Positions 2-60,730 of a DNA stretch of 64,000 nt are shown here, in pieces. Positions within the stretch are counted from its first letter, which is position 1. Every line of letters starts with the position of its first letter. The position numbers and the translations under genes were made by a program. The DNA is taken from positions 124,001 to 188,000 of the IMG/VR virus record IMGVR_UViG_3300035698_035366. One strand, 5' to 3'. The notes beneath the pieces are model-generated. The model was not told the DNA's origin, made no database searches, and worked only from the letters and a program-made list of their open reading frames with translations.

Positions 2-1426
2 CACCGCTTTGAAACAAGAGATGCACAAACAGAACAAGATTTTGGTGGACGACCAAAACCAAAATTCCTGTTTGGTGTGCGATTCATAACTCAGTTCAAT
101 TCACCGGCCTTTGGACAATTTTCTGACCAAAATGGCGACGTCGCTTTTATGGTTAAAACTGTTGATAAACCAAAAATTGATTTTGACGTCACAGTTATGA
201 ATCAATATAATAAGCGTAGATTAGTTCAAACAAAAATAAAATATCAACCAATTAATATGCGTTTTTATGATTCAGTAGATGAAAGACTATCAAAATTTAT
301 ATTATCATACATGCAGCATTACTATGGTGATCATTTAGCAGAAAATGTTGATCAATGGAGTTATGATAAAATTTCTTCAGAATTCAATAATGGTGTAGAT
401 GGTTGGGGTTACAGAGGTATTTCCCAACCAGGCCGCTCAAATTCTGCCCCTTTCATGTCACATATTGAACTTTATCAATTCTTTGGTGGTAATTTTTCTC
501 GTTGGGTTTTTGTTAACCCATTGATTACTAGCTTTGATCATGATAATGTTGATGCAGAATCGGGCAATGTTGCACAAGAAGCAAGTATGTCAGTCGAATT
601 TGAAGGACTTCTTTATAGAGAAAAAAATATCCCATTAGCAACATCTAAAGTTGGTCGCGCAGCAATTGATTTCTTCAAGCTAGAAGAGTTCGCTGATAAT
701 TTAGAATTACCTGATGCACTACAAATCGGCGGTTTAAATCTCGGTGGTATTAGTGATCTTGCATCGGCTAGATCAGTTTTTGGTCGAGAACTTGGTAGGA
801 AAACAATCGAAGTTTTGAGCGGTAGCCCAATCGATACATCAGGCATTTCTAGAACATCATCATCGGCATTAACACCGTTTGGTAACTTTGATTTTGGTTC
901 AGTTATTGTTGGTGAAGGTGTTGATGGATTAATTAGTAGCGGTGTAAGTGGATCGACAGGTGCGGTTTCAAACGCCATTAGAGCTGGTACTGCAAACGTT
1001 GCACGTGATGCTCTTAACTTGGTTAGAGGTAATATTCTTGGAACAGGTGGTACTCGACTCAATGACGGCGCTGCCTCGTTTTGTGCTGACCCAGCAACAG
1101 GATCTGGGACTTCACCGTCCGCATCCCCGGCAGGTGCCGCCAAAGCTGTTGGTCAAACAGGTGGGTTTTCCACACCAGGAGTAGCAGCAGATGAAAATTC
1201 AGCAGTTGTACAGTTTGCAGGAGCGGTGACAACTGGTGTTGATACAGTGGTCAAAGGGGTTGGTGATGGTTTACAGTTTGGATTAGAGACCATCGGGCTT
1301 AGAAATTCCCAATCTACTACAGGAAACCAAATTGGAGTAACAGCTAAACCATTTGTTGACCCAGATTCATTAACGCCTTCACAACGGGCTATTCGGGCAC
1401 AAAACCAATTTCCGGATAACACCTGA
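2..1426 (+). CDS. Tail tube/baseplate (T4 gp19/gp48/gp54-like) protein with long Gly/Ala/Ser/Thr-rich C-terminal extension; 5' end runs off the window
   Basis: Frame is open from position 2 (…RPKPKFLFGVRF…), upstream of the ORF-track start at 77. Motifs VKTVDKPKIDFDVTVMNQYN, YQPINMRFYD and ITSFDHD…SVEFE are typical of tube-fold proteins. Confidence 0.6.
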   Translation, partial: HRFETRDAQTEQDFGGRPKPKFLFGVRFITQFNSPAFGQFSDQNGDVAFMVKTVDKPKIDFDVTVMNQYNKRRLVQTKIKYQPINMRFYDSVDERLSKFILSYMQHYYGDHLAENVDQWSYDKISSEFNNGVDGWGYRGISQPGRSNSAPFMSHIELYQFFGGNFSRWVFVNPLITSFDHDNVDAESGNVAQEASMSVEFEGLLYREKNIPLATSKVGRAAIDFFKLEEFADNLELPDALQIGGLNLGGISDLASARSVFGRELGRKTIEVLSGSPIDTSGISRTSSSALTPFGNFDFGSVIVGEGVDGLISSGVSGSTGAVSNAIRAGTANVARDALNLVRGNILGTGGTRLNDGAASFCADPATGSGTSPSASPAGAAKAVGQTGGFSTPGVAADENSAVVQFAGAVTTGVDTVVKGVGDGLQFGLETIGLRNSQSTTGNQIGVTAKPFVDPDSLTPSQRAIRAQNQFPDNT

Positions 1427-5873: not shown

Positions 5874-7490
<1,617 letters not shown>

Positions 7491-17919: not shown

Positions 17920-18033
17920 ATTATTAATCAGCGCAGGTAATACCAAGTACTCGTTAAATTATATTGAAACCATTACTTGTTTTATACTATAGTAAATATA
18001 GTAATAATAATAACAAGGCTAATAAACAAAGTA

Positions 18034-19062
18034 ATGGCAAAAGACCAATGCACACTAGTAATTGAAGATGAAGTCAACATTAAGTTCAACAATTTAGATC
18101 CAGCAACAAGGCGGAAAGTTGTAACAGAACTAAAATTCTTTGTCCCTTATGCACGTCACACACCAAGCTTCAAGCTTGGTAGATGGGATGGCACTATAAG
18201 CTTAGCCACAACAGGTGGTCGTACTTTCTTCAACCTTCTTGACCGTGTCCTTCCCATAATTATGGATGAAGGTTATGAAATTAAAATTGAGGATCAGCGG
18301 GCTAGTCTTGAACTAGAATTTCCAAAGGCAACGGTTGATATGTTCTCCGATACATTATGGCCAAAAGGTCATATGAATGAGGGAGAACCAATCATTCTAC
18401 GGGATTACCAAGCAGATGTTATTGATGCGTTCTTGCGCAACCCACAGAGTTTACAAGAGATTGCCACCGGCTCCGGTAAGACGATCATAACGGCGGCTCT
18501 TTCAAAACTTTGTGAACCATATGGAAGAACAATTGTTGTTGTCCCAAATAAGGATCTAGTCACACAGACAGAAGCTGATTATATCAACCTTGGACTTGAT
18601 GTTGGTGTATTTTTTGGTGACAGAAAAGAATGGAATAAAACTCATACTATTTGTACATGGCAATCATTGTCGGTTCTTGATAAAAAATCTAAAAATAAAT
18701 TGGCCCTAACCGATGAAGAACTAAACGATTTCCTCAACAATGTTCAAACTATTATTGTTGATGAATGTTTTCACGGGGATTCGTTGGTATTAACCCCAAA
18801 TGGATATATACCTATAAAAGATATTAAATCGGGAGATATTGTTGTTAATTATGATGAAAAAGAGAAATTATTCAAAAACGATGTTGTTAAACAAATATAT
18901 GAAAATTTAACAAATTCATCTAAGGAAGAAATGCTTGAACTTGTATTTGATAATGGTAAAATAATTAAAGTTACAGCTAATCACAAATTCCTAACAAATA
19001 AAGGCTGGATTAGGGCCGATGAATTAAATGAACATCTAACCATTATTGACATAAATACATAA
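18034..19062 (+). CDS. uvsW: UvsW-like SF2 helicase N-terminal half fused to split-intein N fragment
   Basis: LRDYQ Q-motif and IATGSGKT Walker A. The protein ends IIVDE followed by CFHGD…TANH…, an intein N domain. Confidence 0.9.
   Translation: MAKDQCTLVIEDEVNIKFNNLDPATRRKVVTELKFFVPYARHTPSFKLGRWDGTISLATTGGRTFFNLLDRVLPIIMDEGYEIKIEDQRASLELEFPKATVDMFSDTLWPKGHMNEGEPIILRDYQADVIDAFLRNPQSLQEIATGSGKTIITAALSKLCEPYGRTIVVVPNKDLVTQTEADYINLGLDVGVFFGDRKEWNKTHTICTWQSLSVLDKKSKNKLALTDEELNDFLNNVQTIIVDECFHGDSLVLTPNGYIPIKDIKSGDIVVNYDEKEKLFKNDVVKQIYENLTNSSKEEMLELVFDNGKIIKVTANHKFLTNKGWIRADELNEHLTIIDINT
18766..19059 (+). mobile_element. Split intein N fragment (IntN, 98 aa)
   Basis: Block A CFHGDSLVLTPNG…IKDIKSGD and block B IKVTANHKF, then TAA at 19060-19062. 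Confidence 0.9.
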
Positions 19063-19081: not shown

Positions 19082-19975
19082 ATGCCAAAAAAATTTAATA
19101 TAATCAGATTTAATCAATTATTAATGAAACATAATCAAATATTACAAGCCAAATATATCAACAAACAAATAATGCTTACTAATGGAGTTGAGATTATCAC
19201 AATTCCGGAAGTTAGAAAATGTAAACGTCGGGTAATGAATGAATCTATTGAATATATTACCAGATTTGATTTAATATATTCCGGTAATGAAAATTTAGCT
19301 AAAAACGCATTACATGAAGCAAAATCTAAATCAGCATCTGTTGGTGGTAAGAAATGTCAAGAAAAGCATGGTGATTTAATAAAGAAAAATCTTAACACTG
19401 GCATACCTTGGAACAAAGATACTCAAGGTAATTATCCATATTCATTTCCATGTACCAAACAAACCAGAGAAAAAATAAGTAAAGCTAATTCAGGAAAACA
19501 TAATGGAATGTATGGTAAGAAAATGTCAGAATTTGATAAGAGTTATCGAAGCGAACTAATGAAAAATAAAATCAAAAATGGTGAATTTACACCTAATAGT
19601 AATAATAGAAATACTCATTGGGATTCGCATTATGATGGTAATAAATATAGAAGCTCATGGGAAGCACTTTATCATGCTAGTGATCAGGCGGCAGAATATG
19701 AAACTCTTCGAATACCATACAATATAAATGGTGTTGAGCGAATTTATATAGTTGATTTTGTAAATCATTCTACTAAAAAGGCAATCGAAGTAAAACCAAA
19801 ATCACAATTACAAAATTGCTATGAGAAAATAGAAGCATTAAAAGAATGGTGTTATAATAATAATTATGAAATGATAATAGCTGATGAAGATTATCTTCAA
19901 AAAATAGATAAAACAAAAATTAATTTTTCGTTGTTTGATGAAAAAACATTAACTAAAATTGGTAATATTAGATGA
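19082..19975 (+). CDS. Free-standing homing endonuclease (NUMOD3-like DNA-binding segment + TnsA/gp4-like nuclease domain)
   Basis: TREKISKANSGKHNGMYGKK, then YRSSWEA…IPY…YIVDF…IEVKP. Own RBS AAAGGAG; different frame from the two intein halves. Confidence 0.8.
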   Translation: MPKKFNIIRFNQLLMKHNQILQAKYINKQIMLTNGVEIITIPEVRKCKRRVMNESIEYITRFDLIYSGNENLAKNALHEAKSKSASVGGKKCQEKHGDLIKKNLNTGIPWNKDTQGNYPYSFPCTKQTREKISKANSGKHNGMYGKKMSEFDKSYRSELMKNKIKNGEFTPNSNNRNTHWDSHYDGNKYRSSWEALYHASDQAAEYETLRIPYNINGVERIYIVDFVNHSTKKAIEVKPKSQLQNCYEKIEALKEWCYNNNYEMIIADEDYLQKIDKTKINFSLFDEKTLTKIGNIR

Positions 19976-20076
19976 AATTAGTTTCTACAAAAATTATTGA
20001 AAAACCAGAAACCGTATATAATTTAGAAATCGAAAATGATCATAATTATATTGTTGAAGGAGCAGTTGTTTCAAAT
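19972..20076 (+). mobile_element. Split intein C fragment (IntC, 35 aa)
   Basis: Block F VYNLEI…HNY and block G VSN followed by +1 Cys (20077-20079). Confidence 0.9.
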
Positions 20077-20808
20077 TGTCACATGGCAAAGGCTGATGTT
20101 CTAAAAGGTCTTCTAACATCTGCATTCAAGGATTGTCCAATTCGTTGGGGGTTAACCGGGACCATTCCAAAAGAAGATCACGAATTCCTTTCAATTCTTT
20201 CAAGTATTGGCCCAGTCGTTGGAAGCCTAGCAGCAAAAGATCTTCAAGACATGGGTGTTCTTTCAAACTGTCATGTTGAGATTTGTCAACTTCAAGATCA
20301 GCAAGTATTTGGTGATTATCATTCAGAGCAAAAATTCTTATCAGAAAACCCCAACCGTTTAGATTGGGTCTCAAAATTTGTTGAAAATATTTCTAAAGAT
20401 GGCAATTCTTTAATTCTTGTAAATAAGATAGCGACGGGTGAAGCGTTACAAGCAGCAATTCCAGATTCAGTGTTTATATCAGGCAAAGTCAAAAGCGTTG
20501 ATCGAAAAGACGAGTATGATGCAGTATCGTTGGAAGATGGTAAAGTAATCATTGCAACTTATGGAGTTGCAGCCGTTGGAATTAACATACCGCGTATCTT
20601 TAATTTGTTCTTGTTTGAGCCTGGCAAATCCTTTGTCCGGGTTATTCAAAGCATTGGTCGCGGACTACGTAAAGCAAAAGATAAGGATTATGTTCAAATT
20701 TATGATATAACATCTAGTTGTAAATTCAGTAAGAGACATTTAACAGCTAGAAAACGTTTTTATAAAGATGCTGGGTACCCTTTTCGTGTAACCAAAGTTA
20801 AAATATGA
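19972..20808 (+). CDS. uvsW: Split-intein C fragment fused to UvsW-like helicase C-terminal half
   Basis: MKLVS…VYNLEIENDHNYIVEGAVVSN|CH, then WGLTGT (motif III), IATYGVAAVGINIP (V) and QSIGRGLR (VI). Confidence 0.9.
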   Translation: MKLVSTKIIEKPETVYNLEIENDHNYIVEGAVVSNCHMAKADVLKGLLTSAFKDCPIRWGLTGTIPKEDHEFLSILSSIGPVVGSLAAKDLQDMGVLSNCHVEICQLQDQQVFGDYHSEQKFLSENPNRLDWVSKFVENISKDGNSLILVNKIATGEALQAAIPDSVFISGKVKSVDRKDEYDAVSLEDGKVIIATYGVAAVGINIPRIFNLFLFEPGKSFVRVIQSIGRGLRKAKDKDYVQIYDITSSCKFSKRHLTARKRFYKDAGYPFRVTKVKI

Positions 20809-21907: not shown

Positions 21908-22096
21908 CATTGTATAAAAACGAATGAAGCGGGGTATTACCCCGCTTCAAACTTGTTTAAGAAATTGTTCTGTTTTATCTTATACCGATGGTCGAGTTTT
22001 ACTTCCAACTTGGTGCTCGGTAAAACATCATTCGGAAGAAATATTGAATTACTTATTACTTATATTTATACTACATAGTGGTAATTGGAGATTTAC

Positions 22097-23421: not shown

Positions 23422-23696
23422 CAAACTTAAAAAAAATGCAATATCAAGAAAAAAGAACTCAAGAGGAAATTGAGGCGGCTAAGCCCGATCCAATTCCTCT
23501 ACCATTTGTTCAAGCCAAAGAAGCTGTTACTGTTGTTGGTACCGATAATCCAAAGCATCAAGAGACAGTAATAAAACACGACCGAGAAATAAAGAAATTG
23601 ACAAATCAATTACGTAATGCTATGTTAACTATACGTAATATGGAAAATAGAATTAAAGTATTAGAGAGAGAACGACAAAGCGCAGCAAGATGGTAA
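23418..23696 (+). CDS. Small coiled-coil hypothetical protein
   Basis: ATGA-coupled ORF with heptad-like C-terminal half. Confidence 0.6.
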   Translation: MTNLKKMQYQEKRTQEEIEAAKPDPIPLPFVQAKEAVTVVGTDNPKHQETVIKHDREIKKLTNQLRNAMLTIRNMENRIKVLERERQSAARW

Positions 23697-24280
23697 AAAC
23701 GGTAACAGATATTGACATTGATTTTGGCGGTCGAGATAATGTTTTGGAATTAATTCCTCACATCACTGCAAGCCGGTTAGATGGAAATATGCTTGTCAAA
23801 CACAATGTTGGGGTTTATCTCCAGGAAATACCAATGGACCCAATAACTGGGTTATCCACTATTCCATATCAAGAAGCAGAAGAACGTGGATATTTTAAGT
23901 TTGATTTCCTTAATGTCCGGGCTTATGGTTTGGATCAAATCGAAGATGAAGATCATTTATTAAGACTTATTGATCAAGAACCAATTTGGGATATGTTGCG
24001 TTATCAAGATATCACTAACCAACTATTCCAAGTTAACGGAGAGGAAAATTTCCGTCTATTGCAATTAATGCACCCGAAATCAGTTGAACAACTAGCAATG
24101 ACTTTGGCATTACAACGACCCGGAAAACGGCATTTAGTTGGGAAATCATGGGAAAAAATTGAAGAAGAAGTTTGGGATGCCACTGGCGATGGTTATGTCT
24201 TCAAGCGCAGTCACGCTACTGCTTACGCGATAGCGATTGTGGTGCAATTAAATTTATTAACGGAACAAGCGATTGGATGA
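23690..24280 (+). CDS. Miniature DNA polymerase III alpha (DnaE)-like protein
   Basis: DIDIDF, KHNVGVY, FKFDFL, LALQRPG and FKRSHATAY motifs in only 196 aa. Confidence 0.75.
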   Translation: MVKTVTDIDIDFGGRDNVLELIPHITASRLDGNMLVKHNVGVYLQEIPMDPITGLSTIPYQEAEERGYFKFDFLNVRAYGLDQIEDEDHLLRLIDQEPIWDMLRYQDITNQLFQVNGEENFRLLQLMHPKSVEQLAMTLALQRPGKRHLVGKSWEKIEEEVWDATGDGYVFKRSHATAYAIAIVVQLNLLTEQAIG

Positions 24281-24606
24281 CAAGCTGGAAATCTTACGAC
24301 TGGTATAAGGTAGAGAGGTGCCCACAATTCGTTCAAGATGCTGATTGTTGTGATATAAATGATGATGGTGTGTTACCAATTAAATTAGATGTTCCGCAAA
24401 TGAAATTACATCATTTGTTTTGGTGTGTTGATAATTGTGAAGGTTTATTCCATCGATGCCGGCAAGAAAAAATTGACCCAATAGCTGATAATTCGGATAT
24501 AGCTTGGGTTCCGGTAGTAAATGTTATGGCTTTCGAAAATAAAAATGATGCAATTATGTTTAGGCTTAGATGGGGAATGATAGACGATGGCTCCGAAATT
24601 ATTTGA
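24277..24606 (+). CDS. Small protein, FxxxxDAxLFKL family
   Basis: MAFENKNDAIMFRLRWG. ATGA overlap at 24277. Confidence 0.65.
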   Translation: MTSWKSYDWYKVERCPQFVQDADCCDINDDGVLPIKLDVPQMKLHHLFWCVDNCEGLFHRCRQEKIDPIADNSDIAWVPVVNVMAFENKNDAIMFRLRWGMIDDGSEII

Positions 24607-24928
24607 TCACTTAGAACCAACCGATGGGCGAACATTTGAAGAGCTTCACCGATTTCTAACTGGCGAACGAAACGAAAATCACGCAAATAGAATTACTAAA
24701 ATAAATAAATCCAATATAACGCTCCTTAATTCATTAGATTTTGATTGGATGGTTAACAAAGTATTACCTTGGCCTGTTAAATTAAATGACGGTCCACCCT
24801 ATAAGAATTTCGACGCTATTGAAGAATGGTTGATGGATAATTGTCTTGGTCGATATTATGGTAATTATGGGTCGTTTAGATTTGAAATTAAAGATGATGC
24901 AATACGATTCAAAATGACCTGGATGTAA
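24587..24928 (+). CDS. Small protein, FxxxxDAxLFKL family
   Basis: EEWLMDNCLGRY…FRFEIKDDAIRFKMTW. Confidence 0.65.
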   Translation: MAPKLFDHLEPTDGRTFEELHRFLTGERNENHANRITKINKSNITLLNSLDFDWMVNKVLPWPVKLNDGPPYKNFDAIEEWLMDNCLGRYYGNYGSFRFEIKDDAIRFKMTWM

Positions 24929-24929
24929 A

Positions 24930-25127
24930 ATGCATATCGTTGTTATTAAAAATGAAACGCAAGAAGAACGAGCAGAGATGAAGCGATGGTTCATTGATAA
25001 ATATGGTTCTTTGAATAGACGCCGTGATGCATCATTATTTGATTCCGGTAATTTAGCCAAACTCACTTCTTGGGGATTCTTTTTTGAAGAAGAGGACGCG
25101 ATCTTGTTTAAGTTGACTTGGGGATAA
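24930..25127 (+). CDS. Small protein, FxxxxDAxLFKL family
   Basis: FFFEEEDAILFKLTWG. Confidence 0.65.
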   Translation: MHIVVIKNETQEERAEMKRWFIDKYGSLNRRRDASLFDSGNLAKLTSWGFFFEEEDAILFKLTWG

Positions 25128-25130
25128 AGG

Positions 25131-25159
25131 TTGACTTACGCCTCCCAATAAATTATATT
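25131..25159 (+). promoter_or_regulatory. Sigma70-type promoter inside the paralogue array
   Basis: TTGACT-17 nt-TATATT. Confidence 0.65.
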
Positions 25160-25217
25160 AATGCAATCTTACGTATATAAGAAGATGAGATATTGTTTAA
25201 ATTAAAATTGGATTTCA

Positions 25218-25457
25218 GTGATGCAAACATATAACATGGATGAATTTAAGCATTTCGTGCCGATACCTGAAAAAATGCAAGGAGTATCCTGGAAGATAAC
25301 AGATTTGCTATACGACGTTAAACCAAAAGACTATATGATTTTATATAATCTTTACCATGAAGCGAATGGACAATGGCATACTGGGCCATCTACTGTAGCT
25401 GTAGTAATCGCCTTTAAAAATGAGGAAGACGCGGTTAAACTTAGGTTGCAGTTATGA
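25218..25457 (+). CDS. Small protein, FxxxxDAxLFKL family
   Basis: IAFKNEEDAVKLRLQL. Confidence 0.65.
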   Translation: MMQTYNMDEFKHFVPIPEKMQGVSWKITDLLYDVKPKDYMILYNLYHEANGQWHTGPSTVAVVIAFKNEEDAVKLRLQL

Positions 25458-25717
25458 GGTTGTTTTTCTGGAGAAAAGACGAATGTGAACTTCCTACTCA
25501 AATAGAGGAAACTTGGTATGACGAATTTCCTCATGAAATAATTTTGAACTCAATTATAACGATTACTTCAACAGATGTTTATCAATTTCTGAGAGAGAAC
25601 TTTGAAATTGGATCATACCGGGATATCAGGCAACAACAGGGATTTTTTACAGTTACAATTGGATATAAATTCAAGAACGAGGAGGATGCCGCACTCTTTA
25701 AGCTTTGTTTTTTGTAA
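25454..25717 (+). CDS. Small protein, FxxxxDAxLFKL family
   Basis: YKFKNEEDAALFKLCFL. Confidence 0.65.
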   Translation: MRLFFWRKDECELPTQIEETWYDEFPHEIILNSIITITSTDVYQFLRENFEIGSYRDIRQQQGFFTVTIGYKFKNEEDAALFKLCFL

Positions 25718-25728
25718 ATAAGAGCGTA

Positions 25729-26061
25729 ATGCATGATACGATGAAATACTTGAAACTTCGAGAACCTTATCAAGATACTGAGCATGATCTTCTGATTAAA
25801 TCCAAATGGAGAAAAACTGAAAAAATATGTGAAGATAAATGGGATCATGACCTTGATAGGGGATATATTTCAAGTGATAAAAATAAGGCTTATTCTTATC
25901 AAGTGATTGTCGATCAGGTGATAGCGCATAATGAATTGCGTTGGTGTGGTGAGAATTGTAGCGGTAAATTTTATAGAGACCGACAATTTAAATCAGGTTG
26001 TTTGAACATTATGGTGTTTGAATTAGAAGAGGACGCCATATTATTCAGGATGGCTCATTAA
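25729..26061 (+). CDS. Small protein, FxxxxDAxLFKL family
   Basis: LRWCGENCSGKFY…VFELEEDAILFRMA. The start is uncertain (25705 TTG or 25729 ATG). Confidence 0.6.
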   Translation: MHDTMKYLKLREPYQDTEHDLLIKSKWRKTEKICEDKWDHDLDRGYISSDKNKAYSYQVIVDQVIAHNELRWCGENCSGKFYRDRQFKSGCLNIMVFELEEDAILFRMAH

Positions 26062-26600
26062 TGACCAAAATAATTAAACCAATACTAAAAAATACCAATA
26101 TGAGTTTGCTAAGATCATGGCTTGAAGAAGATATGAGCTATGTATCTTGGGAAATAGTGGGAAACGCGATCGAATTCAAAGATGATGGAACAACGGCTTC
26201 GCAATGTGATATAAACCATTATGATACAATGTGGGCTGTCACTTATCCTGATAATGTAGTATTACTTCCAATACACAAAAATGAAGAAATGTTGGCAACA
26301 TGGTTTAATTTGACATGTGATAAAACTTATATACTTAACGAATTTATGATAACAGAAAATTTAAGAACCGTTATACAAGATTCAAAAGATAAGTCAGTTC
26401 ATATAATGTGTAAAAACACTGGGGCATCTTCAATCTCTAAAATTGAAATTGTTGATTTTCATTATGTTTCTAATTGTTCAGTATTATCTACCCCTATGAA
26501 TATAATATCCACTAGCATTGCAATAACATTTGAAGATTATGATGAACAGGTAGAATTTGTTCTTACGTGGGGAGATGCCCGCCATGATACGAATGATTAA
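26061..26600 (+). CDS. Protein of the FxxxxDAxLFKL family, possibly two tandem units
   Basis: C-terminal ITFEDYDEQVEFVLTWG; internal HKNEEMLATWFNLT. Confidence 0.55.
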   Translation: MTKIIKPILKNTNMSLLRSWLEEDMSYVSWEIVGNAIEFKDDGTTASQCDINHYDTMWAVTYPDNVVLLPIHKNEEMLATWFNLTCDKTYILNEFMITENLRTVIQDSKDKSVHIMCKNTGASSISKIEIVDFHYVSNCSVLSTPMNIISTSIAITFEDYDEQVEFVLTWGDARHDTND

Positions 26601-26892
26601 CCTTGATACCTTTGAACAAGAACAATGGAACCATAAGAACGAAGATAAACGGAAACCATTTGTATGGATTAATGGCAACACTGGTTTTAACGCAACTGAA
26701 TTGATACAATGGGTTAATGATAATTGTAAAGGGCGTTTTTTCATACCGGCCACCATGGCCGCCAATCCTAAAATGTTTAGTCATGATATTCTTCGAATTG
26801 GAACTTGGCGTATATGGTTTGAAGAAAAAGATGATGCGGTATTATTTATTTTGACATTTGGTAAAGGTAAAAGCCCGTTTGAATTATCTTAG
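26584..26892 (+). CDS. Small protein, FxxxxDAxLFKL family
   Basis: IQWVNDNCKGRFF…IWFEEKDDAVLFILTFG. Confidence 0.65.
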   Translation: MIRMINLDTFEQEQWNHKNEDKRKPFVWINGNTGFNATELIQWVNDNCKGRFFIPATMAANPKMFSHDILRIGTWRIWFEEKDDAVLFILTFGKGKSPFELS

Positions 26893-28346: not shown

Positions 28347-28877
28347 ATGTTTAAATTAAAAATATGCGGTTTATACGAATCAGGATATTTTATGAATCAA
28401 TGTACGAAAGCGATTGGTATCGTTAATCCTGATGCAGAAGTAACACCAACAGAAAAATATCATGTAACTGTGTGTCATGATATATCTGAGAATATGGAAG
28501 ATTGGTATGTGCTACCAACAATTGAAATGTTTGAAGAGGTTTTAGAATTCTCCAAGGGTTTCGTAGAGTATGATAAAGTTATGATTCATTGCTCGGCAGG
28601 AATAGCAAGAAGCACAGCCACAGCTTTAATGGTATTATTACAGCATGGCGCAACAATAGAAGAAGCATATGATATTGTATTTGAAGCTAGGCCACATATG
28701 AATCCAAATACATTGATACTTTCTTTTGCTGATAACTTATTAGGTTATTCGGGAGAATTGATTGATTATCATAAAAAATGGGCAAAAAACAAACGAATCA
28801 ATCCTACTAATTTTGCTGGACAGAAACTCGCTAACCCAGAAATCGACACCATGAAGAAAATGTTAGCACGACTTTGA
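28347..28877 (+). CDS. Cys-based (dual-specificity/tyrosine) phosphatase
   Basis: HCSAGIARS (CX5R), then RPHMNPN. Confidence 0.85.
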   Translation: MFKLKICGLYESGYFMNQCTKAIGIVNPDAEVTPTEKYHVTVCHDISENMEDWYVLPTIEMFEEVLEFSKGFVEYDKVMIHCSAGIARSTATALMVLLQHGATIEEAYDIVFEARPHMNPNTLILSFADNLLGYSGELIDYHKKWAKNKRINPTNFAGQKLANPEIDTMKKMLARL

Positions 28878-29769: not shown

Positions 29770-30099
29770 ATGGAAAACTATATGTTTGCATATTTTGAAA
29801 CAACTGACCGTCTCAAAATGTATAAGGATAATACACTTGGGGCGATTTCGCTTGACGAAAATGTCAAACTTTGGGCAGAAAATAATGGGATTAATTATAA
29901 CATCCCCAAAATTAGATTTATAACATTGGATCATTTAGATACACGTCTGTCAATGACTGGTTCGCACCCAATGATCGGATATAGACTCATAGAATCGGAT
30001 GCTGTATTATTTAAGTTAGAGTTTATGCTTGCCAAGTTTGAAAAAATTGGATCAAGGGAATATGATGAAATTGATTATATAAAGATAAAAAGAATATGA
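29770..30099 (+). CDS. Small protein, FxxxxDAxLFKL family (divergent)
   Basis: YRLIESDAVLFKLEF. Confidence 0.6.
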   Translation: MENYMFAYFETTDRLKMYKDNTLGAISLDENVKLWAENNGINYNIPKIRFITLDHLDTRLSMTGSHPMIGYRLIESDAVLFKLEFMLAKFEKIGSREYDEIDYIKIKRI

Positions 30100-46924: not shown

Positions 46925-47611
46925 ATGATCCCAATAGTTGAAAAATTCGAATATCCAACGCTAAAACAGATCAATAATTATCAGGGAACAAAAACTCGCC
47001 GTTACGAAACCCCCGATAATGAAAAGCTTCCAAGCGTAACAACAATCCTTAGTGCTACTGGTGATAAAAGCGGTCTTAAAGCTTGGCGAGATTGGGTAGG
47101 CGACAAAGAAGCCGACCGTCAGATGAAAGAAGCTGCTGGTATTGGTTCGTTGATGCACACACATCTAGAAAATTACATTGATGGTGTTGAGCGCCCAAGG
47201 GGAAATAACTTGGCTCGGGTTATGGCCAGAAAGATGGCGGACGAAATTATTAACCGGGGATTGTTTGAGGTTAGTGAAATATGGGGATTAGAGAAGAAAC
47301 TATATTTCCCGGGCCTCTATGCCGGAACCGCCGATGTTATTGGTCTCTGGCGTGGCCTTCCTGCAATTATGGATTATAAGTCATCAAAGAAGATTAAAAA
47401 AGAAGAACATATGCAGGATTATTATTGTCAATTATGCGCTTACTCGATGGCCCATGATGAATTGTTTGGGACAAAAATAAAACACGGTGTTATTTTTATG
47501 GCTGATAGAGAATATAATTACCAGTCGTTTATCATCGATGGTATTAAATTTCAAGAGAAACAGGATATGTGGCTTGGTCGCTTAGATGAATATTACAATA
47601 AACAAATTTAA
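46925..47611 (+). CDS. PD-(D/E)xK exonuclease (RecB/Cas4/MGME1-like)
   Basis: LPSVTTIL, G-S-L-M-H, YAGTADV, IMDYKSS, QLCAY. Confidence 0.85.
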   Translation: MIPIVEKFEYPTLKQINNYQGTKTRRYETPDNEKLPSVTTILSATGDKSGLKAWRDWVGDKEADRQMKEAAGIGSLMHTHLENYIDGVERPRGNNLARVMARKMADEIINRGLFEVSEIWGLEKKLYFPGLYAGTADVIGLWRGLPAIMDYKSSKKIKKEEHMQDYYCQLCAYSMAHDELFGTKIKHGVIFMADREYNYQSFIIDGIKFQEKQDMWLGRLDEYYNKQI

Positions 47612-47922
47612 CCAAAAGAAGATTTAAATAAAACTGCATCTTCTTGATATTCAAACAACACTAGATAAAAATTATTTTTGGAATCTGGTAAAGTTTGGAT
47701 TGTTGGTTTCAATACAAGATCACCGAACGGTGTTTGGCCATTGTTCTTCGCAGCACAACCTATTATTGCATCACTTGAGCATTTAGTTGTAAAGAACATT
47801 CCAGTGCAATTATCTGAGCACCATTCTTTTATCTCTGTTACTTTGCTAAAAGAGAGACTTTCAGACATAACCATAATGACATGGTTGAATTTTAATTCAT
47901 CGTTTCCTGAAAGAGCTTTCAT
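47608..47922 (-). CDS. Small protein, FxxxxDAxLFKL family
   Basis: IKEWCSDNCTGMFF…VLFEYQEDAVLFKSSFG. Confidence 0.65.
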   Translation of the reverse strand: MKALSGNDELKFNHVIMVMSESLSFSKVTEIKEWCSDNCTGMFFTTKCSSDAIIGCAAKNNGQTPFGDLVLKPTIQTLPDSKNNFYLVLFEYQEDAVLFKSSFG

Positions 47923-48775: not shown

Positions 48776-48868
48776 AAAATTAATATAACAGTATATAATA
48801 TCCAATGTCAATATCTAAGTTGGCTTGCTAAATACTATAAGAAACATAGTTTGAAGAGGATTTTAACA

Positions 48869-51295
48869 ATGCCCATTACTCAAGTATCTAGAATAATGCA
48901 CCGTCGGGGGCTATCTACTGAGTTACCACTAGCTCTAAATGAAGGTGAGATTGGTCTAACAACTGATACAGGCCAAGTTTTTATTGGTTCTCCCAATTTT
49001 GCGCCTATTGTCAACCGAGTGGATTTTCCATTTCAAAATATCGAACTCCTTACTGAATTTTCCATAGCTAATCTTTTAGAGACTTCAGCGACTTATACTT
49101 ATCGTTACCAGGATCCAACCAGTATACAATTCCCTGGTCCTGGTTCGTTTAGAACAACACCTGCGTTTACTGCTGAAGGAGAGCGTCTTCTCCAGGAACG
49201 TTTGGATGAATCAGTAAGTGTTAAAGCTTATGGAGCAATCGGTGATGGTATTAAAGATGATACACTGGCAATTATACGGGCCTGTCAGGATATTTTCTCA
49301 AATGAAGCATTATTAGAAGGACCAGCTAGAACATTGTTTTTCCCTGCTGGAGAATATATAATTACATCTACGATACCACTTTATCCATTCACAAAATGGC
49401 TTGGAGAGGGTATTGGAAAAACAAAAATTACTCTAACATCGGTGATTTCAATTGATAGTCTTGGTACATTGACTGTTGGAGTCGACGCTCTTCCTAGCAG
49501 CCCAACCGCCGGTGATCGTTACATCGTATCTGGCACAGGTAATTTAATCGATGGTAGTTTTTCAATTGCAGTCAGTGATGGAGATCAAATTATCGCAACT
49601 GGGATTGATGTTAGCGTCGGCGATCCTTGGAAATTATCCAATGAAATATTAAAAGCCGTTGCTGAAACCGTCGATGGTCAAGGCAATACGGGACTAAACA
49701 TAACTGATCTACATACAATACCGCAAGACATTGAGGTTATTGGTATTGACTTCCAGCTTTCCGACAGTGTTTCAATTGATGCTATTGGTATCGAAGGAGC
49801 AACTGATATTATCCAGCTCAATCGTTCAAATAATGTTAGGTTTGCTTATTGTAGATTTGCGGGTAATTTCGAATGTGCTGACCTAGAAAACAAGATTGAA
49901 TTCGGTGGATATTTCGATGAACCAGGTGCTATTGATTCTAATTTCATGTTACATGGAAAATTTGACATTGATCGTGATGGTATGTGTGTTCGTATTGATT
50001 CATTGAGCAATTTAACACCAGAGATTTTTTCACGTTCTAATTATCAATTTATAGGATGTGAATTCTCTAATCAACCATATGCATTTTATATCACAGATTC
50101 AGTGATTAATGTGAATGTTACTGATGCTAAATTTTATGAAAATTACCGCTCAATCGTTCTTGGAGAAGGCTGTATACCAGGTTTCGCCATAGCAACCGGA
50201 GATTTGACTATTCCATCACCGTTTGTCCCCTTAACAAAGTTTGGACCTAAAAATTTCCGAGTAACCAACTCATTGTTTGAAAATATCGCTGGACCAGGTT
50301 TTAGTGTTTATTCAACCAACTCGGATAACATTTCAGCATATAATGCCTATCGTCATTATGGGCGTGGATGTATCACAACTGAAGATCTAATTCTTGAACC
50401 ATTCATTGCGCCGGGCGTATTCTTTTATGGTGACCCAGAGAATGATTTAGTTACAACTGGTAATGCTTCAGTTAATGATGATTTTGATTATGAACCAGAC
50501 CAGGATAGAGTCGCTGCTCTTAGTGTATTTGCTGATCAAGATAATCGCAGAGTGTTTACATTGTCAAACACCAACACTATTACTGGTTCATCTTTAATTG
50601 ATCATCATCCCAAGGGAACGCAATCAGGTGCAATTACACGAGGCGAAATGGAGCCAACGGTTATTGAACTTGAGAATAATATTTTAGCAGAGCCACAACA
50701 AATTAATAAACCAACTGGTATCATTCTTGAATTAGACGGTGAACAAAAAGCTGACACTATTATTATTGATTATTCATTACGACGAGGGTTTTCATCCCGA
50801 AAGGGCCAACTTCATATTTGTGCTGACTCTTCGGGTTCAGACATTGAATGGGATGAGCATGTTGTTGAGGTGGGTAACGTAGCCATAGATGTTGACTTTG
50901 ATGTTACATTGGCTGTATTATCAAGCCCTGAACTCGCTGATCCATTATTTGTTCGTGTAAAATATACCGATAATGCTGATCCAGTTGATTATGGCAACCC
51001 AGGTTTTCACGAATCAACCGACAAGATATATCTTAAATGGGCCGCTACTTATTGGGATAGTTCAATAACATCATATGGGACGACCACCCCTGCAGAGCTT
51101 GAGCCAAACGGTCTTATTGATATTGCTGATCAAGCGGGCGTTCTTGATTATGGTTTCGTTACTGACCTTCTACCGGATCAGGAAGACTTTGAATCAGTTG
51201 ACGGATCTCCAGAATCATTAACCGCACCGAATGCTAATATGACATTACCAATGGAAGCCCCAGATAGTCCTCCAACTGTCTACGGCACTTTATAA
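48869..51295 (+). CDS. Tailspike/tail fibre-like protein with pectate-lyase-type beta-helix
   Basis: N-terminal HRRG…LNEGEIGLTTDTG; LQERLDESVSVKAYGAIGDGIKDDTLAI; LFFPAGEY. After GCTAAATA (48827). Confidence 0.75.
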   Translation: MPITQVSRIMHRRGLSTELPLALNEGEIGLTTDTGQVFIGSPNFAPIVNRVDFPFQNIELLTEFSIANLLETSATYTYRYQDPTSIQFPGPGSFRTTPAFTAEGERLLQERLDESVSVKAYGAIGDGIKDDTLAIIRACQDIFSNEALLEGPARTLFFPAGEYIITSTIPLYPFTKWLGEGIGKTKITLTSVISIDSLGTLTVGVDALPSSPTAGDRYIVSGTGNLIDGSFSIAVSDGDQIIATGIDVSVGDPWKLSNEILKAVAETVDGQGNTGLNITDLHTIPQDIEVIGIDFQLSDSVSIDAIGIEGATDIIQLNRSNNVRFAYCRFAGNFECADLENKIEFGGYFDEPGAIDSNFMLHGKFDIDRDGMCVRIDSLSNLTPEIFSRSNYQFIGCEFSNQPYAFYITDSVINVNVTDAKFYENYRSIVLGEGCIPGFAIATGDLTIPSPFVPLTKFGPKNFRVTNSLFENIAGPGFSVYSTNSDNISAYNAYRHYGRGCITTEDLILEPFIAPGVFFYGDPENDLVTTGNASVNDDFDYEPDQDRVAALSVFADQDNRRVFTLSNTNTITGSSLIDHHPKGTQSGAITRGEMEPTVIELENNILAEPQQINKPTGIILELDGEQKADTIIIDYSLRRGFSSRKGQLHICADSSGSDIEWDEHVVEVGNVAIDVDFDVTLAVLSSPELADPLFVRVKYTDNADPVDYGNPGFHESTDKIYLKWAATYWDSSITSYGTTTPAELEPNGLIDIADQAGVLDYGFVTDLLPDQEDFESVDGSPESLTAPNANMTLPMEAPDSPPTVYGTL

Positions 51296-51955: not shown

Positions 51956-54256
51956 ATGAAAGTAAGAAAAAGAACAGGGGAACTGGTTGAGCTAGATATC
52001 AATAAAATGCATAAGGTTGTATACTGGGCGACAGAGGGAATCGCTGGCGTATCTGCATCTGAAGTCGAATTGAAATCTCATTTGCAATTTTACGAAGGTA
52101 TTGAAACGAGCAATATACAGGAAACTTTGATCAAAGCCGCTGCTGATTTGATTACGGAGGAAACACCGAATTATCAGTTTGTTGCTGGTAGATTGATTTC
52201 ATATCATTTGCGGAAACAGGTTTATAATCAATATGAACCATGGCATTTATATGATCTCGTTAAAAAGAATGTTGATATTGGATTCTATGATCCTGAACTT
52301 CTTGAGACCTATACCGAAGATGATTTCAATAAACTAAACTCATATATCAACCATGACCGGGATATGAATTTAACATATGTCGCAATGGAACAGTTTCGTG
52401 GTAAGTACCTAGTACAAAACCGAGTAACGGGTAAAATATTCGAAACACCGCAAATGTCATATATTTTAATTGCTGCTTCATTGTTTTCTGATTACCCAGT
52501 CGAAACAAGAATGCAATATATTCGAGAATATTATAATGCCATTTCAACATTTGCTATCAGCTTACCAACTCCGGTTATGGCCGGTGTTCGTACACCACAA
52601 CGCCAATTTTCCTCTTGCGTTTTGATTGAGACCGATGACAGTTTGGATTCAATTAGTGCAACTTCAGCAGCTATTGTTCGTTATGTTTCCCAAAAGGCGG
52701 GTATTGGTATTGGTGCGGGCCGAATCCGCGCCATTAATTCACCTATTCGTAATGGCGATGCATATCACACTGGTGTTATTCCTTTCTATAAAATGTTTCA
52801 GGCGGCTGTTAAAAGTTGCTCACAGGGCGGTGTAAGGCGCGCCGCCGCCACATTATATTATCCAGTGTGGCATTTAGAAGTCGAAGATTTGCTTGTATTA
52901 AAGAACAATAAGGGCACTGAAGATAACCGTGTTCGTCAACTTGATTATGGGGTCCAATTTAGTAAGCTCTTTTATGAACGGCTTATTAAAGGTGAAAACA
53001 TAACATTGTTCAGTCCAAAAGATGTTCCTGGATTATATGATGCCTTTTTCAACGATGAAGAACTATTTCGTAAATTATATGAAGAGGCCGAAAATGATTC
53101 AACATTACGGAAAAAGACAATCAAAGCAAATGATTTGTTTACTTCTTTCATGCAGGAAAGAAAAGATACGGGTCGCATATACTTGATGAATGTAGATAAT
53201 GCAAACCAACATTCTTCTTTCGATGAAAAAGTTGCTCCGATTTATATGTCCAATCTTTGCTGCGAGATAACGCTTCCAACAAAGCCCTTGAATGATATAA
53301 ATGACCCGGATGGCCGAATAGCCCTCTGTACACTCTCAGCAATTAATTGGGGTGTTATTAAAAACCCTGAAGATTTTGCAAAACCATGTGATCTAGCAAT
53401 CCGTGGACTTGATGCATTATTGGATTACCAAAAATATCCTGTATTGGCTGCACAATTACATTCAATTGAATGGCGCCCACTCGGTGTTGGTATAATTAAT
53501 CTTGCATACTTTCTAGCAAAAAATGATACCAATTATACCAACCCAAATTTGGAATTAGTTGACGAATATGCAGAAGCTTGGAGTTATTATCTAACTAAGG
53601 CAAGTGCTGATTTGGCTACTGAAAAGGGTGCATGTTTGTCAAATAATAATACCAAATATAGTAGGGGTATTTTACCTATTGATACACGTAAACCAGCAGT
53701 GGATGAACTGGTTCCGTATAAAGAACGTATGCCGTGGGAAGAGTTGCGTCAACAATTGAAAGAAACAGGGATTAGAAATGCAACGTTAATGGCTCTTATG
53801 CCAGCAGAAACATCAGCGCAAATTAGTAATTCGACCAATGGTGTTGAACCACCCCGTTCATATGTTAGTATTAAGCAAAGCAAGCACGGTGTTTTGAAGC
53901 AAGTTGTTCCAGAATTTCGCCGCCTGAAAAACAAATATGAATTACTTTGGGATCAGGAAAGCCCTGAGGGCTATTTGAAGATCATGGCTGTATTACAAAA
54001 ATATGTTGACCAAGCAATTAGTGTAAATACATCATATAACCCAAAATTCTATGAAGATGAAAAAATTCCGATGTCGGAAATGTTGAAGCACCTTTTGATG
54101 TTTTATAAGTACGGAGGGAAACAACTCTATTATTTCCAGACACATGACGGCGCCGGAGAAATTGATTTCGGTGATATTGAAACAAGTGACACATCCAATC
54201 TAGAAGTATTAACCTCACTTGATGATGAGGAAGGTTGTGATAGTTGTATTTTATAA
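51956..54256 (+). CDS. nrdA: Class Ia ribonucleotide reductase alpha subunit
   Basis: ATP cone VRKRTG, PTPVMAG, FSSCVL, SNLCCEI, MPAETS, KQLYY, C-terminal CDSC. Confidence 0.97.
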   Translation: MKVRKRTGELVELDINKMHKVVYWATEGIAGVSASEVELKSHLQFYEGIETSNIQETLIKAAADLITEETPNYQFVAGRLISYHLRKQVYNQYEPWHLYDLVKKNVDIGFYDPELLETYTEDDFNKLNSYINHDRDMNLTYVAMEQFRGKYLVQNRVTGKIFETPQMSYILIAASLFSDYPVETRMQYIREYYNAISTFAISLPTPVMAGVRTPQRQFSSCVLIETDDSLDSISATSAAIVRYVSQKAGIGIGAGRIRAINSPIRNGDAYHTGVIPFYKMFQAAVKSCSQGGVRRAAATLYYPVWHLEVEDLLVLKNNKGTEDNRVRQLDYGVQFSKLFYERLIKGENITLFSPKDVPGLYDAFFNDEELFRKLYEEAENDSTLRKKTIKANDLFTSFMQERKDTGRIYLMNVDNANQHSSFDEKVAPIYMSNLCCEITLPTKPLNDINDPDGRIALCTLSAINWGVIKNPEDFAKPCDLAIRGLDALLDYQKYPVLAAQLHSIEWRPLGVGIINLAYFLAKNDTNYTNPNLELVDEYAEAWSYYLTKASADLATEKGACLSNNNTKYSRGILPIDTRKPAVDELVPYKERMPWEELRQQLKETGIRNATLMALMPAETSAQISNSTNGVEPPRSYVSIKQSKHGVLKQVVPEFRRLKNKYELLWDQESPEGYLKIMAVLQKYVDQAISVNTSYNPKFYEDEKIPMSEMLKHLLMFYKYGGKQLYYFQTHDGAGEIDFGDIETSDTSNLEVLTSLDDEEGCDSCIL

Positions 54257-60722: not shown

Positions 60723-60730
60723 TATTTAGC
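60723..60730 (-). promoter_or_regulatory. Late-promoter variant GCTAAATA
   Basis: Upstream of the ligase/NTase polyprotein. The same 8-mer lies upstream of genes at 2556, 28878, 32886, 37522 and 48827. Confidence 0.55.

Follow-up and report, generated by a model that had tools for sequence, protein, structure and literature searches.

A family of small proteins with a common C-terminal domain, carried in tandem arrays by jumbo phages

Giant phages are known to expand small domains in a lineage-specific manner. Bacillus phage G carries a zinc-ribbon family of about 35 copies, described in a survey of 224 jumbo phages as functionally uncharacterised, with a suggested role in regulation or binding (Iyer et al. 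2021, PMC7824862). The subject of this report is a comparable expansion in the virus record IMGVR_UViG_3300035698_035366, seen as an array of eight consecutive small open reading frames (ORFs) in a window of 64,000 nucleotides (nt) that comprises bases 124001-188000 of the record; coordinates below refer to the window unless given as genome positions. The family resembles the zinc-ribbon expansion of phage G in that dozens of copies of one small domain occur in a single giant phage genome. It differs in having another fold and no metal ligands, in its occurrence in many phage lineages and in its organisation in tandem arrays. Literature searches found no published description of the family, and it did not turn up in term searches of the jumbo-phage survey (Iyer et al. 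2021, PMC7824862). The domain, its breadth across phages and its array organisation thus appear undescribed so far.

Two further groups of known systems invite comparison. RNA recognition motifs (RRMs; PF00076) and other ferredoxin-like domains have the same order of structural elements and a similar strand-3 to helix-2 junction, F-x-F-x3-E-D-A, and RRMs and ACT-like domains are among the best structural neighbours of the family. Unlike RRMs, its members have no fourth strand, no profile match and no conservation at the stacking positions of RNP1 and RNP2, and they are acidic. Diverged immunity-protein arrays adjoin polymorphic toxins, and virulent phages carry arrays of small early takeover or anti-defence genes. 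Such arrays share with the present one the short, diverged paralogues on the same strand and the quick turnover between close relatives. In contrast to them, the family has no adjacent toxin gene and matches no known immunity or anti-defence family; the neighbours of the array are a DnaE fragment, a conserved minus-strand gene, a lipase and a phosphatase, and no toxin domain was found among them.

Searches of curated collections agree with the preliminary description of this DNA, which knew of no assigned function: there is no family match in Pfam, PHROGs, NCBIfam or the PDB. The eight ORFs gave nothing better than E = 0.007 against Pfam-A, PHROGs v4 and NCBIfam, all matches falling below the curated cut-offs, and 128 domain pieces searched against Pfam and PHROGs gave single chance-level matches only. 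Weak matches to DUF3110, DUF960, CPxCG_zf, TscA and AcrIIA13 were rejected as chance. Proteins of phages Atu_ph07, PA5oct and Phosso are true homologues, which add to the distribution of the family and not to its function. About one gene in ten in this genome, 44 matches in Phosso and more than 2,000 public clusters represent one domain family that is unnamed in curated databases, and a profile for it would let thousands of phage genes shed the label 'hypothetical protein'. Should the members be diversified binders of host proteins, they would form a ready catalogue in which to look for novel anti-defence or host-shut-off activities and for the targets of these; as nucleic-acid binders they would be a new class of phage regulators. 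The question is directly testable, since members are carried by the cultured phages PA5oct (host Pseudomonas aeruginosa PAO1), Atu_ph07 (Agrobacterium tumefaciens C58) and Phosso (Sinorhizobium meliloti).

The array, its family and their evolution

The source record is a single contig of 296,119 bp with 38% GC. The large terminase, encoded at 5880-7490, shares 56% identity with its counterpart in Sinorhizobium phage Phosso and about 50% with the PA5oct and Atu_ph07 proteins, which places the phage in the T4-related Atu_ph07/PA5oct group of jumbo phages. The array occupies 24277-26892 on the + strand, and its eight ORFs, of 109, 113, 65, 78, 87, 110, 179 and 102 amino acids (aa), are also present in the Joint Genome Institute (JGI) gene calls for an identical contig. 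They adjoin or overlap by 1-44 nt, except for two short spacers and one gap of 93 nt. All eight encode a hydrophobic strand and a helix that follow the pattern f-x-F-x-x-x-(D/E)-(D/E)-A-x-x-F-(K/R)-L-x-(W/F) and end 0-10 residues before the stop codon, the pattern being degenerate in ORF4 and ORF7. A second motif, W-x-x-x-N-C-x-G-x-(F/Y), is exact in ORF1, ORF2, ORF6 and ORF8 and degraded yet recognisable in ORF3, ORF5 and ORF7.

Membership was assessed with an external profile built from 112 domain pieces of metagenomic proteins only, which is not fully independent of the array, as its pieces were first found via an alignment that included the eight ORFs. The profile was searched against the 3,608 stop-to-stop ORFs of the genome and against the same ORFs reversed, with a cut-off of E < 0.01. 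It matches 44 genome ORFs, and none of the reversed ORFs scored below E = 0.16. Within the array, a profile match with the domain at the extreme C-terminus was found in all eight proteins; six have E values of 5e-6 or lower and are secure members, and ORF4 and ORF7 (1e-3 to 5e-3) are weak ones, matched mainly over the terminal strand-helix.

ORF1 (24277-24606; 109 aa, E = 5.9e-13) carries the motif as W-C-V-D-N-C, and its start codon shares an ATGA with the stop codon of the DnaE-finger fragment gene upstream. ORF2 (24587-24928; 113 aa, E = 1.2e-14) is the member that was modelled with AlphaFold. ORF3 (24930-25127; 65 aa, E = 5e-6) is a minimal member and opens a four-gene block that is absent from a close relative, contig L051. 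ORF4 (25221-25457; 78 aa, E = 1.3e-3) is a weak member with the terminal strand-helix only, and overlaps by 4 nt with ORF5 (25454-25717; 87 aa, E = 1.2e-8). ORF6 (25729-26061; 110 aa, E = 5.7e-13) has ORF1 as its closest paralogue. ORF7 (26061-26600; 179 aa, E = 5e-3) is an outlier with a secure terminal strand-helix. ORF8 (26584-26892; 102 aa, E = 1.1e-13) has alternative starts at 26575 and 26557 and converges on a minus-strand gene at 26889-27284/27425. The only gap of the array holds a further trace of the family, found by repeat analysis and translation beside a promoter-like site: at 25181-25210 on the + strand, directly after a stop codon and out of frame with ORF4, the sequence encodes E-D-E-I-L-F-K-L-K-L, which is probably what is left of a decayed or truncated ninth copy.

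The remaining copies cluster at genome positions 9.6-15.5, 56, 66-68 (minus strand), 93-96, 114, 171.6 (minus strand), 193-200, 206, 214, 220-222, 257 and 295.5 kb. The member at 171.6 kb lies in the window at 47608-47922 (minus strand; 104 aa, E = 1.6e-10) and has a sigma70-like site 889 nt upstream on its own strand. In addition, a 109-aa ORF at 29770-30099 has the sequence E-S-D-A-V-L-F-K-L-E-F some 25 residues from its C-terminus. Its score with the first motif profile was E = 0.04, and with the external profile it fell below threshold; this ORF may represent a highly divergent member that is extended at the C-terminus. With about 44 of some 411 crude gene calls, the family makes up about one tenth of the gene set. 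Pairwise identity among members does not exceed about 38%, and only 65 of the 946 genome-wide pairs are linked by BLASTP at E < 1e-3. ORF1 and ORF6 (38% identity over 60 aa, BLASTP E = 5e-8) are the only clear mutual nearest copies within the array, and the best paralogue of ORF2 lies 48 kb away; the duplications are therefore old. The members are mostly acidic (median isoelectric point, pI, 5.4; above 8 in only 8 of the 44), and four have a transmembrane-like N-terminus.

The preliminary description had reported eight ORFs with a common C-terminal motif, and ORF calls, JGI calls and profile scores all support this. The second motif that it had seen in several of them was recovered in four exact and three degraded forms. 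It had noticed no DNA-level repeat, which is essentially right because DNA repeats in the array are only stretches of 15-38 nt with 63-93% identity that encode the conserved motifs. Its old, expanded family is borne out by the low identities, the few BLASTP pairs and the 44 copies. The scale of the expansion had been underestimated: the family has about 44 genes in this genome and is widespread in phages, and the array is only one cluster among about ten.

Outside this genome, an exhaustive search with a hidden Markov model (HMM) against 1.84 billion representative proteins returned 2,241 matching protein clusters at E <= 1e-3. The matching proteins are small (median 83 aa). In 113 of the 151 best matches, no more than one residue separates the end of the domain from the C-terminus, and 12 have two domains in tandem; the best 150 include one spurious tandem-repeat protein. 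The HMM count that the preliminary description had proposed, genome-wide and across jumbo phages, gives 44 in the present genome, 44 in Phosso, 9 in Atu_ph07 and 6 in PA5oct, and the genomes of RaK2, T4, KVP40, P-SSM2 and phiKZ gave no profile match. The members in PA5oct (e.g., PQE65_gp209 and gp210), Atu_ph07 and Phosso are annotated as 'hypothetical protein', with one exception, a PA5oct match at 185424-185564 that lies inside gp201, annotated as 'Endonuclease III-like protein'. Two of the PA5oct members are separated by a few genes from a 'DNA polymerase III' fragment gene upstream.

Cellular genomes were searched with the back-translated motif E-D-A-x-L-F-K-L-T-W, for which the expected chance rate is about one per 10^12 positions. 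In 185,579 bacterial and archaeal genomes (596 Gb) it gave a single match, which is attributed to chance because its contig holds no family ORF. The same motif occurs at 19 IMG/VR loci, 18 of which carry one to nine members, mostly adjacent to one another. The family is thus effectively phage-restricted among the collections searched. Runs of about 20 consecutive members are found on each of two metagenomic contigs (10-14 kb), and tandem arrays are the normal state of the family. It is detectable only by profile searches: megablast of the region against 50,697 phage records and tblastn of a two-domain relative against phages gave no match, and a protein homologue search with ORF8 returned only ORF8 itself. 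A fusion search with an alignment anchored on long proteins returned only one two-domain protein that was already known, and no informative N-terminal domain was recognised by Pfam in the long members or in a Phosso member of 336 aa.

The site of the array can be followed in related phages. Its backbone, in the order orf22085, orf22750, orf23418, DnaE-finger fragment, array, minus-strand gene and orf28907, is conserved in five other phage contigs, in which the number of family genes at the site varies: none in L021 and L024, three in L022 and L023 and four in L051, against eight in the window. Another contig suggested as a relative by its coordinates, L039, was rejected as an unrelated locus. 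L051 comes from another sample, and its backbone proteins are mostly 72-89% identical to those of the window. It has orthologues of ORF1 (61% identity), ORF2 (40%), ORF7 (48%) and ORF8 (39%), all family orthologues in it being intact, and lacks the block from ORF3 to ORF6 (24930-26060) together with the promoter gap. The number of nonsynonymous substitutions per site (dN) relative to L051 is 0.31-0.68 for the family genes and 0.07-0.20 for the flanking genes, the exception among the latter being the 92-aa orf23418 (52% identity, dN 0.41). Synonymous sites (dS) are saturated in this comparison; dN/dS is 0.23-0.30 where it can be computed. In a second contig, syntenic with the cluster at 93-96 kb, five orthologues are intact with identities of 31-74% (median 59%, against a median of about 71% for their neighbours). 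From this divergence, the intactness of the orthologues and the variation in copy number it follows that selection maintains the family, that its sequences change several times faster than most of those around it, and that gains and losses involve blocks of genes.

Promoter-like matches are no commoner in the 7-kb region around the array than in shuffled sequence. With the strict sigma70-like pattern TTGAC[AT]-N16-18-TAnnnT, 66 sites were found in the genome, of which 45 lie in gaps (12% of the genome) and 61 on the + strand, with the highest density at 235-294 kb. This intergenic enrichment means that the class is real, and the internal promoter that had been proposed at 25131 is one of its members: TTGACT-17-TATATT is present in the only intergenic gap of the array (25131-25159, + strand), about 60-90 nt upstream of the ORF4 start, and the site probably drives ORF4 to ORF8. 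ORF1 to ORF3 follow replication-type genes without a gap and are probably co-transcribed with them from a start past a hairpin at 21925-21949. This hairpin is a perfect 11-bp GC-rich one with T-runs on both strands; it looks like a bidirectional terminator that parts the helicase/intein block from the operon entering the array. The motif TATAAATA, which serves as late promoter in T4-type phages, occurs at 51 genome sites and is likewise enriched in gaps, which hold 37 of them. The sigma70-like and TATAAATA sites are likely to be early and late promoter sets, and early expression of part of the family is plausible.

Fold and conserved positions

A model of ORF2 was obtained with AlphaFold2 and an alignment of 128 rows. 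Its core, with a predicted local distance difference test (pLDDT) score of 87-97, consists of a strand (residues 62-65), a helix (72-85), two strands (90-93 and 96-99) and a second helix (102-112), and the N-terminal 55 residues form low-confidence helices. The C-terminal domain of about 55 residues is best described, on the strength of this model, as an RRM/ferredoxin-like sandwich minus its last strand. The first five elements superpose on RRMs at Z scores of 4.3-5.3. The four-stranded b1-a1-b2-b3-a2-b4 arrangement of an RRM was not found, as the model stops after helix 2 and the protein ends one residue later, leaving no fourth strand. The exposed aromatics of RNP1 and RNP2 were likewise not found: there is no PF00076 match, and the base-stacking positions are variable.

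Column statistics identify the conserved positions (ORF2 numbering) as W81, C/L82, N85, C/I86, G88, an aromatic residue at 90, F97, F99, D104, A105, F108, K/R109, L110 and W112. The W and the N-C-x-G lie in helix 1, the aromatic residue in strand 2 and the f-x-F in strand 3, and D-A-x-L-F-K-L-x-W forms helix 2. Most of these residues look structural, contributing to the hydrophobic core, to capping of a helix (D-A) or to its ending (N-C-x-G). No catalytic or metal-site constellation is apparent in the column conservation, the cysteines being only 48-60% conserved. Along strand 3, the alternation of residues would put F97 and F99 at the sites that are buried in RNP1.

A Foldseek search of the ORF2 model against the PDB gave nothing below E = 1. 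An independent aligner (VIA-align) found only generic ferredoxin, RRM and ACT-like matches with Z scores up to 5.7; the neighbours include the fourth RRM of Pes4 (Z 5.3), PABP, Pub1 and La. In BFVD and the ESM Atlas the neighbours are uncharacterised phage proteins, with proteins of Atu_ph07, PA5oct and Phosso among the BFVD matches, and in the AlphaFold DB clusters they are uncharacterised proteins; next come RRM, reverse-transcriptase palm and YajQ-type folds with template modelling (TM) scores below 0.5. The ESM Atlas model of ORF8 has phage hypothetical proteins and RRM domains (TM about 0.5) as neighbours and shares one fold class with the AlphaFold model of ORF2. For ORF7, AlphaFold is confident only at a helix (14-24), a strand (152-157) and a helix (160-170). 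There is also a weak similarity between residues 8-41 of ORF7 and the initial two thirds of the domain (single-sequence E about 1e-4 to 8e-4), and for this reason ORF7 may be a degraded two-copy fusion.

The preliminary description had predicted a small alpha/beta domain with a fixed C-terminal strand-helix and variable surfaces, and had named unrelated predicted folds as an outcome that would count against it. The models accord with the prediction: the core pLDDT of ORF2 is about 90, ORF2 and ORF8 fall in the same fold class, and in the alignments the N-termini and loops vary and the C-terminal strand-helix is fixed.

Possible roles of the family

The reading favoured here, tentatively and at somewhat less than an even chance, is that the family is an accessory arsenal of diversified binder proteins for host takeover or for counter-defence through the neutralisation of host defence or toxin proteins. 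Its members would be small cytoplasmic proteins, a few of them membrane-anchored, each with a variable N-terminal segment and the C-terminal domain of about 55 residues. The domain would act as a stable non-enzymatic scaffold, and the variable N-termini, the loops and the open face of the sheet would give each paralogue a binding specificity of its own. The targets would be host proteins, bound in the course of takeover or in neutralising defence or toxin proteins; the genes of the arsenal would stand in tandem arrays that can expand, with host-type sigma70 promoters responsible for at least part of their transcription. A non-enzymatic scaffold with variable specificity is proposed because conservation falls on hydrophobic and capping positions, because the N-termini and loops are hypervariable and because the composition is acidic; the four members with a transmembrane-like N-terminus were also counted towards it. 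Binding directed against the host we infer from the virus restriction, the block-wise turnover and the fast protein evolution. The acidic composition, unlike that of typical nucleic-acid binders, and the position of the sigma70-like site upstream of ORF4 within an intergenic-enriched and strand-consistent set also speak for such an arsenal.

Other observations weigh against it. Fast divergence and turnover fit an arms race but would suit relaxed constraint too. No similarity to known anti-defence, antitoxin or takeover proteins was found in searches of the PDB, Pfam and PHROGs: profile matches in the PDB are non-significant (best E = 0.21; an AcrIIA13 chain E = 1.4), and TscA matched one of 128 members, at chance level. 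The text of the PA5oct omics paper makes no mention of the members in that phage. The fold class is generic (best Z 5.7), and the fusion of the domain with a putative homing endonuclease in L051 hints at a nucleic-acid context. The bias of family genes to sigma70-like over TATAAATA sites is weak (28/40 vs 197/371, p = 0.046, with genes that are not independent), and the family cluster at 220-222 kb sits behind a TATAAATA motif.

A bolder form of the favoured reading, which must be regarded as doubtful, is that the family is a virus-exclusive, programmable library of truncated RRM-like binders, each copy neutralising another host defence, toxin or housekeeping target or complementing a strand of its partner in lieu of the absent fourth one. 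If this were true, the library would be among the most abundant undescribed reservoirs of counter-defence or takeover functions in jumbo phages, accounting for about 10% of the genes of this genome.

The main rival to the binder reading, itself unlikely, is that the domain is a nucleic-acid-binding module, either RRM-like with RNA or single-stranded DNA as its ligand or a DNA accessory, so that the paralogues would be small regulators that act on phage or host genes at the post-transcriptional or DNA level. The order strand-helix-strand-strand-helix, the F-x-F-x3-E-D-A junction, which recalls RNP1 and helix 2 of an RRM, and the presence of RRMs among the structural neighbours (Pes4, PABP, Pub1 and La for ORF2; TM about 0.5 for ORF8) all point this way, but the Z scores are no higher than chance resemblance between folds can give, there is no fourth strand and no Pfam RRM match was obtained even at E <= 1. 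In RNP1 of an RRM, positions 3 and 5 are exposed and stack on bases, and positions 6 and 8 are buried. The conserved F-x-F would fall on the buried pair, and the positions that would be exposed are not conserved. The acidic pI argues weakly against binding of RNA or single-stranded DNA. A nucleic-acid role is also suggested by L051, where a NUMOD3 plus TnsA-like endonuclease encoded between the halves of a split-intein UvsW-like helicase is 445 aa long and ends in the family domain (E = 5.6e-6); this fusion is, however, a single case, and the orthologue in the window (19082-19975) is without the domain.

Somewhat less likely than either nucleic-acid binding or the binder arsenal is a docking module, the second option of the preliminary description, in which the C-terminal domain would bring differing N-termini to one common partner, such as a machine of the phage or the host, and the paralogues would be interchangeable adaptors; in a variant of this model the partner might supply the missing fourth strand. 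Such a role would suit a domain that stands at the extreme C-terminus in nearly all members and occurs twice in tandem in 12 of 151 relatives, with an invariant conserved part joined to entirely different N-termini. Helix 2 is hydrophobic nearly all round (D-A-V-L-F-K-L-T-W), K/R109 is 85% conserved, and the sheet has an open edge where the fourth strand is absent. Core packing alone can nevertheless explain the conserved residues, many members have almost no N-terminal cargo (e.g., ORF3, with 65 aa), no candidate partner co-occurs with the family, and the family gave no match in RaK2, T4 and KVP40, related phages that have the common core machinery. The remaining model, in which small ORFs spread by duplication and recombination are tolerated by a large capsid as neutral or selfish filler and most copies are functionless, is improbable, and also less likely than the binder and nucleic-acid readings. 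It would account for the very fast divergence, for copy numbers of 0-8 at the site among relatives and for the decayed relic in the array gap. It is at odds with a core motif kept across thousands of clusters with GC contents of 0.36-0.53, with positional orthologues that are intact past saturation of dS and have a dN/dS well below 1 where it is measurable, and with a compact, overlapping gene layout typical of expressed phage operons.

Neighbouring genes and other features of the window

The phage sequence is present only in DNA sequencing runs, all of them salt-lake metagenomes, and the same run search found no RNA run that contains it. Contigs from salt-lake runs cover the array region at low depth as near-identical fragments without structural variants. 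Several window proteins are also recorded on a contig of 407,795 bp; the record of 296,119 bp may be incomplete, or a larger assembly may exist.

Directly upstream of the array, 23690-24280 encodes a stand-alone protein of 196 aa that matches only the finger domain of the DNA polymerase III alpha subunit (E = 3e-4). More than 1,000 metagenomic proteins of the same length are 48-85% identical to it, and the corresponding region of PA5oct has a 257-aa gene annotated as 'DNA polymerase III', which suggests a fragmented DnaE in this phage group. Downstream, 28347-28877 encodes a dual-specificity phosphatase of the HC-x5-R type (Pfam DSPc, E = 5e-9), whose gene is inserted in this phage only; in L051 the class-3 lipase gene is directly followed by the homologue of orf28907, with no phosphatase between them, and more distant relatives have neither lipase nor phosphatase at the site.

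Further upstream, a UvsW-like helicase is cut by a split intein, with ResIII/DEAD and Hint domains encoded at 17977-19062 and the C-terminal part of the intein and Helicase_C at 19972-20808. A free-standing gene for the NUMOD3 plus TnsA-like endonuclease (297 aa) lies between the two halves. Elsewhere in the window, 48851-51295 encodes a tail-fibre-like protein with an Mtd_N and a pectate-lyase-like domain, 51956-54256 the large subunit of a class I ribonucleotide reductase with an ATP-cone, and 60726-62837, on the minus strand, a subtilase (Peptidase_S8).

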